The notes beneath the pieces were generated by a model. It saw nothing but the letters and a program-made list of their open reading frames with translations, was not told where the DNA came from and searched no databases. The position numbers and the translations under genes were made by a program. Shown here in pieces: positions 59,823-64,000 of a stretch of DNA of 64,000 nt. The stretch is from Trichosphaerium sp. ATCC 40318 (lineage: Eukaryota; Protista; Tubulinea): NCBI GenBank assembly GCA_038496445.1, contig JALMLS010000027.1, positions 62,001 through 126,000 of the forward strand, written 5' to 3'. Each line of letters opens with the position of its first letter. Position 1 is the first letter of the stretch.

Positions 59823-61857
59823 ATGTTAAAGCTCGTGGTAGTGATACTCTCTGTACTGAGTACGTTGACACTGTACTCCCAAGCTAACAGTGTAAGGTGT
59901 AATATTTAGCGCTCCATCAGCCCCTGTGGCACCCACGGCGCCTATCGCTCCTGTGGCTCCTGTGGCGCCTACGGCACCTATCGCTCCTATGGCGCCCACT
60001 GACGCCCCAAAAGCACCAGTTGCTGTACCTCCTACAACAATGCCTACAACAGAAACGCCTACAACAATAGCCCCAACAATGTCGCCAACAATGGCTCCAA
60101 CTAATAGCACACCTACAACAACATCTCCAACAATGGCCCCAACAGCTCCAACAATGGCACCAACCAATAGCACACCAACAGCACCTACAGTATCGCCTGT
60201 AGCTCCAAAAGCGCCAGTGGCACCAAGTAATAACACCCCAATAGCGCCAAGTGTACCTGTTGGCCCATACGTCATTTCTGGCGTTGACTTTAAACTATGG
60301 TAAGAAAGTAATCATGTGACGGTATTATTTCTCAAAAAAAAATTAGGGATAACGTTTTACGCAAAAATGTAAGACCTGGCAACTCAAAAACTGATTTGGG
60401 TATGTACATAAATTATTAAAGAATTAATGCGTAACAACCAATATAGGCGCTAAAAAATCAATTGAGCTTAATGTTGTAAACTATACGGGCATCAGAGACC
60501 ACCCAGACTTCCCAAAACTTATTGAGGGATTGAAAAACGCAATAGATCCTACAAAACTTGAAGCTCACGGTAAACGTACTGAGTTTTATGCGTTCTGGAT
60601 TAATGTGTACAATATTTTTGCCATTAACATGGTACGTCAAACAGTTCCTACGAATTCGCTTTTCTGCTCTTTCCTTTTTTGCTCTTTTTTTTTTTTGGAT
60701 TGTTGGGGTATTAATTTTGTATTTTAGATTATAAGTCATCCTTGCAAAGAGGATTTATTTGGTTCTTGTGGTCCTCTTGGTTCTATTCGTCAAGTTGGAG
60801 AGCAACAACCTGCTGCGTTCGCAAAAGTTTGGGGCCTCAATGCTGGTAATGTAGGTGGTTCTGATCACACTTTGGATGGTATTGAGGTATTTAGTTTGCA
60901 CAAACTTTGGTTATTGTACTTCTTTAAGAGATGGCTCATTAACATTTAGGGTATGCTCCGTAGTCCACCGGCGGCTCTTAATGCTACAGAAGACTCACGT
61001 CTTCACTCATGCATCGTATGTGCTTCCATCTCTTGTCCTAATTTGAGGTATGTTAGATCTTTTTTTTTTTTGTCAATTTGTCTAACCGTTTTTCTTTCAG
61101 AAACGAAGCCTTTATTCCTTCCACATTGGACGCACAAATGCATGACCAAATGGTTGATTTCTTCAATAATACTGGTAAAGGTTTGGCCTTGGACACGTGC
61201 GTACTTGAAGTTGTTATGTGGCTTTTTCTCGCTGTTATTGTTTAACGCTTACGCAACTACATAGAGGCGCTAATAAAGTCCAATTGTCATCTATTTTCGA
61301 TTGGTTTAAAAACGATTTTAACGACGGCAACGTAGTACGTAATACAGAGTGTATCTAAGCATAGAGTTTTGCGTTTTAAACGATTTTTTTCTTTTCAATT
61401 GAAACGCAATCTAAGATGTTGTAGTTGGGTTGGATTAACGCTGGTGACTTGCTTTTCAACAATGCTACCTTTGTGTGTACGTAACAAAAGACCTAAACGA
61501 AAGAAAACCCAAAAAAGCTTACCCTTTGTTAAGCAAACTCCACAGAACAGTTCTTGCTTAAAAATACAAATATTAAGTATTTCTCATACGACTGGGATGT
61601 CAATGGCAAAACTGACGTACGTGTGTTGATAAAAAAGCATCTTTGAACGTGCAAGAGAAGTTTAAAACCAGCCGGCTGTTCTAATTTTGAGTTCGTAGGA
61701 TCTTTGTGGTAAAAAGAGCAGACCTTGTTTCCCTTGGTGGGCACTATTGATTATCATTGTTCTACTTCTTGCTATCGGATTAACCATAGTTTGTATCGTT
61801 CGCAGACGTAAAAAGAAACAAAAGTATGAGCGTATCAACGATAACGAAGATTATTGA
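59823..61857 (+). CDS. DUF547-domain membrane protein with a signal peptide, a Pro/Thr/Ala-rich stalk and a C-terminal TM helix
   Basis: MLKLVVVILSVL; PTA-rich exon 59926..60303; VVNYTGI, AFWINVYNIFAI, TLDGIE, DSRLHSCIVCASISCPNL, LSSIFDWFKNDF, YFSYDWDVN; TM WWALLIIIVLLLAIGLTIVCIV followed by RRRKK. Confidence 0.85.
59911..60262 (+). repeat. Low-complexity coding repeats (APVAPTAPIAP / PTMAPTNSTPT)
   Basis: Imperfect tandem repeats such as CCTATCGCTCCT and CCAACAATGGC, encoding a mucin-like stalk. Confidence 0.8.
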
Positions 61858-62765
61858 AACTAAAGTAATTAACCTATCCAAAAATTTTCACCAATCATCT
61901 TTTTTTTCCAATAAATAACTATTGATTTTAAACTGGACTACTGCTATTGTTTTTGATTCTTATGGTTACAAATAAGTTTGTTCACGTGGCTCAATACTTT
62001 TTCTGATCGTTGCTCAGCTAATGCAATGCAAGGAAAGCGATAAAATACAGAGTAAAGTTGAAACAAATATTGACAGAACTTGCAAGAGTAAGAAGCAAGA
62101 GATTGTTACTTAGCACAATAGTGAATAATTGCAATTCACTAATTGTTCTTACATTTTTGTGAAAGAGTGTCACCAAAGTACTAGAACCAAAAGGCAAGCG
62201 ATGGGTAAGTGTGTAAAAGCTTCAAGTAACTTTAAGATAATTTTTGTTTTTTTGCTTTTATTTGAAAAAGTGTTCAAAAACTTAACGTGTTTGTAAGAAA
62301 ACGTTGCAAACAGGTTGACAATGGCAGAGCAGGATAAATTAGCAGCATTTGTATTCACTATCCATGACAATAAAGCAACACCACTCTGTGAAGCCTTCAA
62401 CGTTTCAAGTGTAAATTTTTTTTCCACAAATAGCGTAAAGGAGTCCCTGCGATTCTTTGGTAATGATTCCAGGCGTAAACTAAATTCTTAACGATATATT
62501 TAGCAAAAACAGTTGCTGATCGTCTAACAACCAAACCAGATCAACACAAAACAACACTGACACATGAAGGCTATTTTATTAATGTTCTAGTGTCATCAGG
62601 GCTTATACTCATTCTGGTAACCAAAAATGGACTAACACGCTTGGATTTTGGGTGCTTAAGTAAAATTGAACAGGCAGTGAAAACATCGTACGGTGTTACG
62701 CGTAACACATGAGTCTAATTTTCATGACACTATCCAGCGGATACAAAAGTGATCCTACGCAACCC

Positions 62766-64000
62766 ATGGCACAACTGGAGTCCTCTTTGACAGCTATTCT
62801 TACGATGTCGGACGCAGCAGATGATAAAATTACAAAGGTAAACTTCGTTTTTCTTCAATCTGTTTTTTTGCTTGGCACGTGATATTTTGTACTTTTAAAC
62901 AACTAAGTGTGCCCTGGACACTATTTTCAAGAAATAATCGTCTAAGTGATGGAATATCTTGTTCTTTGTCATGAAGAAAACTAACTACTTCAAGCTGCAA
63001 CAACAGATTGACTCAAATAAGGAGATATTAATTCAGAACATTGATTCAGTTCTTGAAAGAGGAGAACGTATCGACAACCTTGTATGTCTTGCGCTGTTTT
63101 TTTAGTTTCATCCTTGTTTTACCGCGTATGAGACACGTGTAACATCATTGTAGGTGTGTCAAAGCGCGGACTTGAGTGTTTCAGCGAAGTCTTTTTATAA
63201 GAAATCTTCAAGCTTGAATTCCATTGGATTAGGCTTTTCTGGGTTTAATTGGGGATCTTCTACACCTAATATTAACGCACTTCTACCTGGTGTTGCCAAT
63301 ATAGATGGTAGCGTATTCGCACAGGAAAAATCAGCAAACCAAGATGCTGTAGATGGACTCATTACAGAGGTATACTTCCAATGTAGAATCTGTTGTTAAC
63401 CGATGATGTAGGGAGGTGATGTTGTTCGTGTAAAGGAAGTTAAAGTAGATGCGAATGTATTGGATATGGCTTCTTCAGTAAACGTCACACAAACTTACAT
63501 TAATCAATATGACACAGCCATAGAGACAAAGTATGTTTTGTTGGGTTTTTTTTGTAAGTACTTCATGTTTATATTCGCTAGATTTTCGTTCCCTCTTAAT
63601 GCTCTCGCTGCTGTATGTAAATTTACAGCAACGATCGATGGCCACGATATTGTCGGTGTTGTTCAAACTAAAGAGGAAGCAGAGGAGACTTATGATGATG
63701 CTCTTGCTGAAGGAAGAACAGCAGCTTTGATGCAAGAAGGTAAAAAAAACTTCACTCGAGAATCTTACATTTCTAATTGTTCTTTTAGAGGAGCCTGATG
63801 TTTTTGTCACATCTCTTGGCAATATACCACCTGGTGCTGAGGTTATTATAAAGATCACATATGTATCAGAGTTAGAGGTTGATGGAAAGGACATTAAATT
63901 CGTTCTACCTACAAGTGTAGCGCCAAGATATGCTCCTCCGGCTGATTTACAAACTCAGACATTGCCAAGTATTTCGAATGTTTTCTTTTCTATTGGCCTT
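62766..64000 (+). CDS. R-SNARE (synaptobrevin/VAMP7-like) motif fused to a VIT domain (VWA5A/PARP4-like); runs off the window
   Basis: DDKITK/LQQQIDSNKEILIQNIDSVLERGERIDNL/VCQSADLSVSAKSFYKKS is spliced in frame to GLITE/GGDVVRVKEVKVDANVLDMASSVNVTQTYIN...FSFPL...AAVCKFTATIDG...EAEETYDDALAEG...DVFVTSLGNIPPG...FVLPTSVAPRY. Confidence 0.85.

Follow-up and report, generated by a model that had tools for sequence, protein, structure and literature searches.

The final part of a 64,000-nucleotide stretch of Trichosphaerium sp. ATCC 40318 DNA (the window; contig JALMLS010000027.1, positions 62,001 to 126,000) carries the 5' part of an expressed gene whose product is an 852-residue cytosolic protein made of a longin domain, an R-SNARE motif, a linker, a VIT domain and a vWA domain. 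Judged by alignment and by a predicted structure, the N-terminal part is a complete Ykt6 from which the lipid anchor is missing, rather than the bare VAMP7-like helix that a previous, sequence-only reading of this DNA had described. Among R-SNAREs, only Ykt6 moves back and forth between the cytosol and membranes by means of a lipid switch. In the gene described here that switch has been removed and a large protein-binding module added, a natural test of an anchorless Ykt6. With a probability of roughly one half, the protein would be a fusion-incompetent R-SNARE that is derived from a diverged Ykt6 paralogue and controlled by its longin domain; its role would be to dock the VIT-vWA module on Q-SNARE complexes or to block such complexes.

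Results

Gene structure and transcript

Reading positions 62200-64000 of the window in three frames reveals a spliced gene on the + strand that begins at ATG 62321 and continues past the end of the window (Table 1). An in-frame stop codon lies eight codons upstream of this ATG. The start had previously been placed at 62766, which is in fact the internal Met118, since the longin exons 1 and 2 precede it in the same mRNA. The seven introns are 42-157 nt long and every one is GT..AG; joined in a script, the exons give 405 codons with no stop. Canonical phase-0 introns had been said to connect the SNARE motif with the VIT domain. This is true of the two introns on the path from one to the other, 63082-63153 and 63370-63411, whose joints are present in transcript contigs; it is not true of the later introns within the VIT region, which have phases 2 and 1. 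The vWA domain and the C-terminus are encoded beyond the window, in about 1344 nt.

Table 1. Exons and splice joints of the gene (window positions) and domains of its product (residues of the 852-aa protein P0001)
Feature	Position	Strand	Content and evidence
Exon 1	62321..62459	+	Start codon and first longin part, aa 1-47; Ykt6-like around aa 26-45; from reading frame and Ykt6 alignment; matches nt 1-146 of transcript contig L001
Exon 1 joint	62459/62504	+	Present in X1 and X2 contigs
Exon 2	62504..62687	+	Longin core, aa 47-108; Pfam Longin E 1.8e-5
Exon 2 joint	62687/62738	+	Seen in X1; loose end of X2 contig equals exon 3 start
Exon 3	62738..62837	+	Longin-to-SNARE connector and SNARE layer -7, aa 108-141
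Exon 4	62995..63081	+	SNARE layers -6 to +2; Pfam Synaptobrevin E 8.7e-7; matches R-SNARE structures
Exon 5	63154..63369	+	Single open exon: SNARE layers +3 to +8 (aa 171-192) followed by linker aa 193-242
Exon 6	63412..63530	+	VIT domain start; Pfam VIT/VIT_2; joint 63369/63412 in X1 and X2
Exon 7	63582..63739	+	VIT core; Pfam VIT E 4.4e-15; joint in X1 and X2
Exon 8	63789..64000, continuing past window	+	VIT end and stretch after it; Pfam VIT; L001 nt 1009-1222 map here
Longin	aa 47-103		Pfam 23.2 bits, just below cut-off 26.2
Synaptobrevin (PF00957)	aa 136-192		Pfam 51.7 bits, cut-off 26.4
VIT	aa 250-359		Pfam 121.2 bits, above cut-off
vWA	aa 494-652		Pfam; VWA_3 85.3 bits at aa 494-643, above cut-off

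Transcript contigs from three public studies were placed on 62000-64000. All seven splice joints are present in them, and overlapping contigs give a continuous path from exon 1 to exon 8: exons 1-2 are joined in one contig, exons 2-3-4 in another, exons 3-4-5 in two, and exons 4 through 8 in one of 2093 nt that extends about 1350 nt past the window. A separate JGI transcript contig, L001 (2614 nt), contains the entire coding sequence in one piece, with the stop at nt 2566, and its first 1222 nt align with the successive exons of the window at 98-100% identity. L001 was retrieved via P0004, a cluster mate of P0001; an exact look-up of P0001 on contigs gave no match. Given that SNARE and VIT exons share contigs and that L001 spans them all, they belong to one transcript, as the sequence-only reading had supposed. 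In run X1 the word depth of the contig over exons 2-4 (62503-63032) is 6.2, compared with 36.9 for that over exons 4-8 (63043-64000), a gap that may reflect 3' bias or an extra downstream transcript start, between which contig depths cannot decide.

Database queries were single exons or proteins returned by the searches. Exon 5, searched against a representative protein set, returned P0001, an 852-residue protein from the MMETSP marine protist transcriptomes. The match covers aa 171-242 of P0001 at 99% identity, exactly where the gene model places exon 5, and over the window part of the model 403 of 405 residues are identical. The bacterial protein P0002, returned by the same search, was discarded as a spurious low-complexity match. 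Between the assembly and other strains or runs the amino-acid differences are A9V, T91P (in the longin domain) and Y185S (between SNARE layers +6 and +7), at sites 62346, 62635 and 63197-63198. Of six differences in coding sequence seen in other strains or runs, four are synonymous, which gives weak support for constraint.

A complete Ykt6 without its lipid anchor

The sequence-only reading had stated that no longin domain precedes the SNARE helix. Exons 1 and 2 do encode one, detected by Pfam on exon 2 and spliced into the same transcript. When aa 1-200 were compared with solved structures, aa 10-193 aligned with residues 8-194 of rat Ykt6 (E 1.3e-14, 57.7 bits), the best match; the same query gave 1.9e-9 against VAMP7 and 0.06 against Sec22b. 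The SNARE motif alone shows the same preference, scoring 43 bits for Ykt6, 35.5 for VAMP4, 34 for VAMP8 and 29.5 for VAMP7, and the VAMP7-like assignment made earlier is therefore replaced. The ESM Atlas model of aa 1-197 matches a Ykt6 cluster with a TM score of 0.83. AlphaFold, run on aa 1-250 as a single sequence, gave a poor model (pLDDT 46.5), and a PDB search with exon 2 alone returned nothing useful.

The helix itself is complete, as had been claimed: it scores 51.7 bits against a cut-off of 26.4, and the zero-layer arginine is Arg163 (codon 63058-63060). From layer -7 to layer +8 the residues read I L I N L N V R I L S L A F S L; all 16 positions are plausible, follow the canonical R-SNARE pattern and are close to those of the canonical relative P0003. 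The polar layers are Asn at -4 and Ser at +3 and +7, where Ykt6 also reads Thr or Ser in an alignment read by eye. Because the Ykt6 alignment runs from end to end, the SNARE motif alone also prefers Ykt6, the Atlas model matches the Ykt6 cluster and the 16 layers are kept, we infer that the N-terminus is a whole Ykt6 without the anchor.

The Ykt6 alignment stops at aa 193, just before the position of the CCAIM lipidation box. Neither this box nor the Ykt6 stop codon is found in the frame of exon 5, and there is no Cys between aa 172 and 294. In place of the box, a short Gly/Ser/Phe/Trp-rich stretch follows directly on the SNARE helix (aa 194-206 of P0001), as the beginning of a linker of about 57 residues (aa 193-249) that leads into the VIT domain; the linker of some 50 residues into a clear VIT domain (121.2 bits) that had been reported is thus confirmed. 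Another form of anchor was not detected. The best 19-residue hydropathy window in the whole protein scores 1.72 and lies within a longin strand, whereas the transmembrane helix of the canonical relative scores 3.29, in agreement with the earlier statement that no transmembrane helix follows the SNARE motif. The C-terminus has no CAAX box, the protein ending in FFRN, and the 852-residue product has no signal peptide.

The Ykt6 part is strongly diverged. In a word search with aa 1-200, almost no 5-residue words are common with any longin SNARE; the single match was the VAMP7-like protein P0003, and no Ykt6 was returned. Because of this divergence we consider the Ykt6 part to be probably a diverged paralogue, as judged from its sequence, and not the housekeeping Ykt6, and its SNARE partners may have changed. 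P0003 was considered as a paralogue and rejected; its source organism has a G+C content of 51%, different from that of the window's. The central 15 residues of the SNARE motif are nevertheless identical to those of P0003. That these residues are identical despite the different G+C content, and that all 16 layers are kept, points to continued selection on SNARE pairing.

An intracellular VIT-vWA module

A vWA domain downstream of the VIT domain had been anticipated, and it is present beyond the window (aa 494-652 of P0001). Compared with solved structures, aa 243-852 match best the VIT-vWA region of PARP4 (E 4.3e-68). By sequence the module is of the intracellular VWA5A/PARP4 kind, which upholds the previous classification. 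The DxSxS start of the MIDAS motif is intact at aa 501-505; the later Thr and Asp were read by eye only. The intracellular VIT-vWA clade is spread across eukaryotes, and for one of its members, the cytoplasmic Dictyostelium protein Vwa1, autoinhibition and joint action with an F-box protein have been proposed (PMC10539598).

A word search with the VIT-vWA part yielded 574 relatives. Among the 120 of these that were listed, the closest by identity are bacterial (40-42%), one of them confirmed as bacterial by its gene neighbourhood. A recent bacterial origin of the module was rejected despite the top identity of 42%, as two trees both place it outside the bacterial clade (support 100), beside protist VWA5A-like proteins (support 85-90). 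Since the module sits on a long branch in the trees, its closest sister is uncertain. P0001 ends 56 residues after the start of the TSFVAVD motif, whereas its relatives go on for 150-300 residues; it has neither their long disordered linker nor their helical C-terminal domain. Pfam finds neither WD40 propellers nor a PH-like domain on P0001, and no TPR or DUF2135 either. With NCBIfam the only match, to a VIT-vWA sortase-target family, falls below threshold, and the PADLOC defence models, a prokaryotic library, give no match for the product.

Other VIT-vWA proteins that carry an R-SNARE motif

Among the 120 relatives listed out of 574, a Synaptobrevin match occurs in only two other groups. In the sponge Ephydatia muelleri, the near-identical tandem VIT-vWA paralogues P0102 and P0124-P0127 (Em0001g2773a to 2788a), annotated as hypothetical, each have a brevin-like R-SNARE motif with no anchor around aa 600-650. 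The ENA protein P0109, a eukaryotic VWA5A-like protein of 1106 residues encoded on contig L004 (66% G+C), has a Ykt6-like SNARE helix at aa 844-913, deep in a low-complexity linker. In both groups the helix follows the vWA domain, lies in a disordered linker and is not accompanied by a longin domain. Like P0001, the proteins Em0001g2773a, 2777a, 2780a, 2788a and P0109 combine Synaptobrevin, VIT and vWA without an anchor; they differ from it in domain order, in the lack of a longin and in belonging to other subclades, and all are uncharacterised. Because the three kinds of bearer sit in three different subclades of the tree, R-SNARE motifs seem, on sequence grounds, to have joined the VIT-vWA module more than once, in separate acquisitions.

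A further likeness concerns the residues directly after the SNARE helix, where each SNARE-bearing protein has Lys-Lys and a Gly/Ser/Phe/Trp-rich stretch. Basic residues followed by a Gly/Ser/Phe/Leu/Trp-rich motif also occur in the linkers after TSFVAVD of many eukaryotic VWA5A-like proteins (for example P0092, P0067, P0045, P0070, P0107 and P0101), and SNARE-less relatives have similar stretches. By analogy this may be a membrane-binding amphipathic motif, as its composition recalls that of curvature-sensing ones. We found no prior description of such a basic and Gly/Ser/Phe/Leu/Trp-rich linker motif.

The order longin-SNARE-VIT-vWA was not found in other proteins, either by the representative query with one exon or by word-based search. 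Likewise, no orthologue from another species was recovered in the representative search with exon 5, in the word search of long proteins with aa 1-250, where P0001 itself was the only match, or in a scan of JGI metagenomes with aa 1-250. In the literature searched, no paper combines "R-SNARE" and "VIT domain", and searches for VWA5A with SNARE and for Ykt6 fusions gave nothing relevant. The architecture had been described as without a characterised precedent. We too found no characterised protein that has it, yet uncharacterised proteins of Ephydatia muelleri and from ENA hold the same kinds of domain in another order. As far as these searches reach, what is new is the longin-SNARE-VIT-vWA layout, and proteins with Synaptobrevin, VIT and vWA in a different order were already in the databases.

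Discussion

The protein described here resembles three known systems, each in part. With Ykt6 it shares a longin domain followed by an R-SNARE motif with the zero-layer Arg and the lack of a transmembrane helix. Where Ykt6 has the CCAIM box for palmitoylation and farnesylation, P0001 has a linker and about 600 residues of VIT-vWA, and it is far more diverged than Ykt6 orthologues usually are. As in VWA5A/BCSC-1, PARP4 and Dictyostelium Vwa1, a VIT domain precedes a vWA domain whose MIDAS motif starts with DxSxS, and a signal peptide is lacking; P0001 differs from these in its N-terminal Ykt6, its shortened C-terminus and the lack of a PARP domain. Tomosyn and amisyn also present an anchorless R-SNARE motif on a larger soluble protein, and because of this common feature the expected mode of action, entry into Q-SNARE complexes without fusion, is shared with them. 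The resemblance is functional only, as there is no homology outside the SNARE motif: the WD40 propellers of tomosyn and the N-terminal PH-like domain of amisyn are both missing from P0001, and its SNARE motif is Ykt6-derived, located near the N-terminus and equipped with its own longin.

Plugging into Q-SNARE complexes, as the sequence-only reading proposed, is a reasonable expectation for an R-SNARE motif that appears intact and has no anchor. The motif would still zipper with Qa, Qb and Qc SNAREs; because the anchor is absent, the protein would be unable to pull two membranes together. From retained pairing and an absent anchor would follow a role in docking or in blocking. On the one hand, the VIT-vWA binding module could be brought to membranes that display free Q-SNARE acceptor complexes, whereas on the other hand Q-SNARE complexes could be held in a non-fusogenic state, as by tomosyn and amisyn. 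As in Ykt6, pairing is probably gated by the longin domain, which would fold back on the SNARE helix. As to origin, a diverged Ykt6 paralogue probably lost its last codons together with the stop, and splicing would then have joined the truncated gene to a VWA5A-like neighbour at the first coding exon of the latter.

A question remains, are there other explanations for a Ykt6 joined to a VIT-vWA module? That two neighbouring genes, one for Ykt6 and one for a VIT-vWA protein, are merely connected by read-through or by chimeric assembly is close to refuted. The separate 5' and 3' contigs of run X1, with their depths of 6.2 and 36.9, could hint in this direction, as a sign of an extra downstream start. 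However, SNARE layers +3 to +8 and the linker are encoded by a single open exon that has neither CCAIM nor a stop, the same joints appear in contigs of three studies and an independent contig of 2614 nt covers the entire coding sequence. As the fusion lies in the DNA itself, within exon 5, read-through or a chimera is very unlikely. A different possibility, which we regard as improbable, is that the Ykt6 part no longer pairs with other SNAREs and has become a regulatory cap, its longin domain and helix autoinhibiting or dimerising the VIT-vWA module or recruiting it through longin partners. Longin domains bind many non-SNARE partners, and the strong divergence of the Ykt6 part would fit such a change of function. 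Dictyostelium Vwa1, for which autoinhibition has been proposed, would be a precedent for control of this kind (PMC10539598). Against it, all 16 SNARE layers have been kept, the zero-layer Arg included, the central 15 residues are identical to those of P0003, and two other lineages carry a SNARE helix alone, with no longin.

The Ykt6 copy might also serve as bait or decoy, mimicking the real SNARE on a VIT-vWA scaffold and thereby catching or sensing pathogen factors that attack R-SNAREs; we think this doubtful. Many intracellular bacteria live in amoebae, and Ykt6 is a substrate of some clostridial neurotoxins. In the sponge, the genes are near-identical paralogues in tandem, an arrangement often seen among immune-type genes, and R-SNARE motifs were apparently captured more than once and at different places. 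Yet a decoy should stay near its model, whereas this copy is far diverged from canonical Ykt6; in the tree the module of P0001 has ordinary eukaryotic VWA5A-like proteins around it, the protein bears no signalling or effector domain, and known defence-system models, from a prokaryotic library, gave no match. If the copy does act as bait, it would be a case, in a eukaryote, of defence by displaying a copied fusion protein. We prefer the simpler reading, a fusion-incompetent R-SNARE that would dock its module on Q-SNARE complexes or block them.

VWA5A-type proteins are widespread and their function is poorly known. The joining of R-SNARE motifs to them in three lineages provides a testable lead, pointing to SNARE complexes or membranes as the site where they act. 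It is conceivable, though on balance unlikely, that VIT-vWA proteins of the VWA5A family, the poorly understood human tumour suppressor VWA5A/BCSC-1 included, act at SNARE complexes or membranes generally, and that three lineages independently hard-wired this link by capturing an R-SNARE motif. The protist would then have taken a whole Ykt6, another eukaryote a Ykt6-like helix and the sponge a brevin-like helix.

The gene immediately upstream in the window (59926-61857, + strand) seemingly begins with a Pro/Thr/Ala-rich, mucin-like stretch (59926-60300). This is followed by pieces of DUF547, with weak Pfam matches in 60530-60724 and 60953-61261, and the 3' end (61747-61857) encodes a hydrophobic helix and a basic tail. 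A DUF547 protein with a C-terminal membrane span looks unusual.
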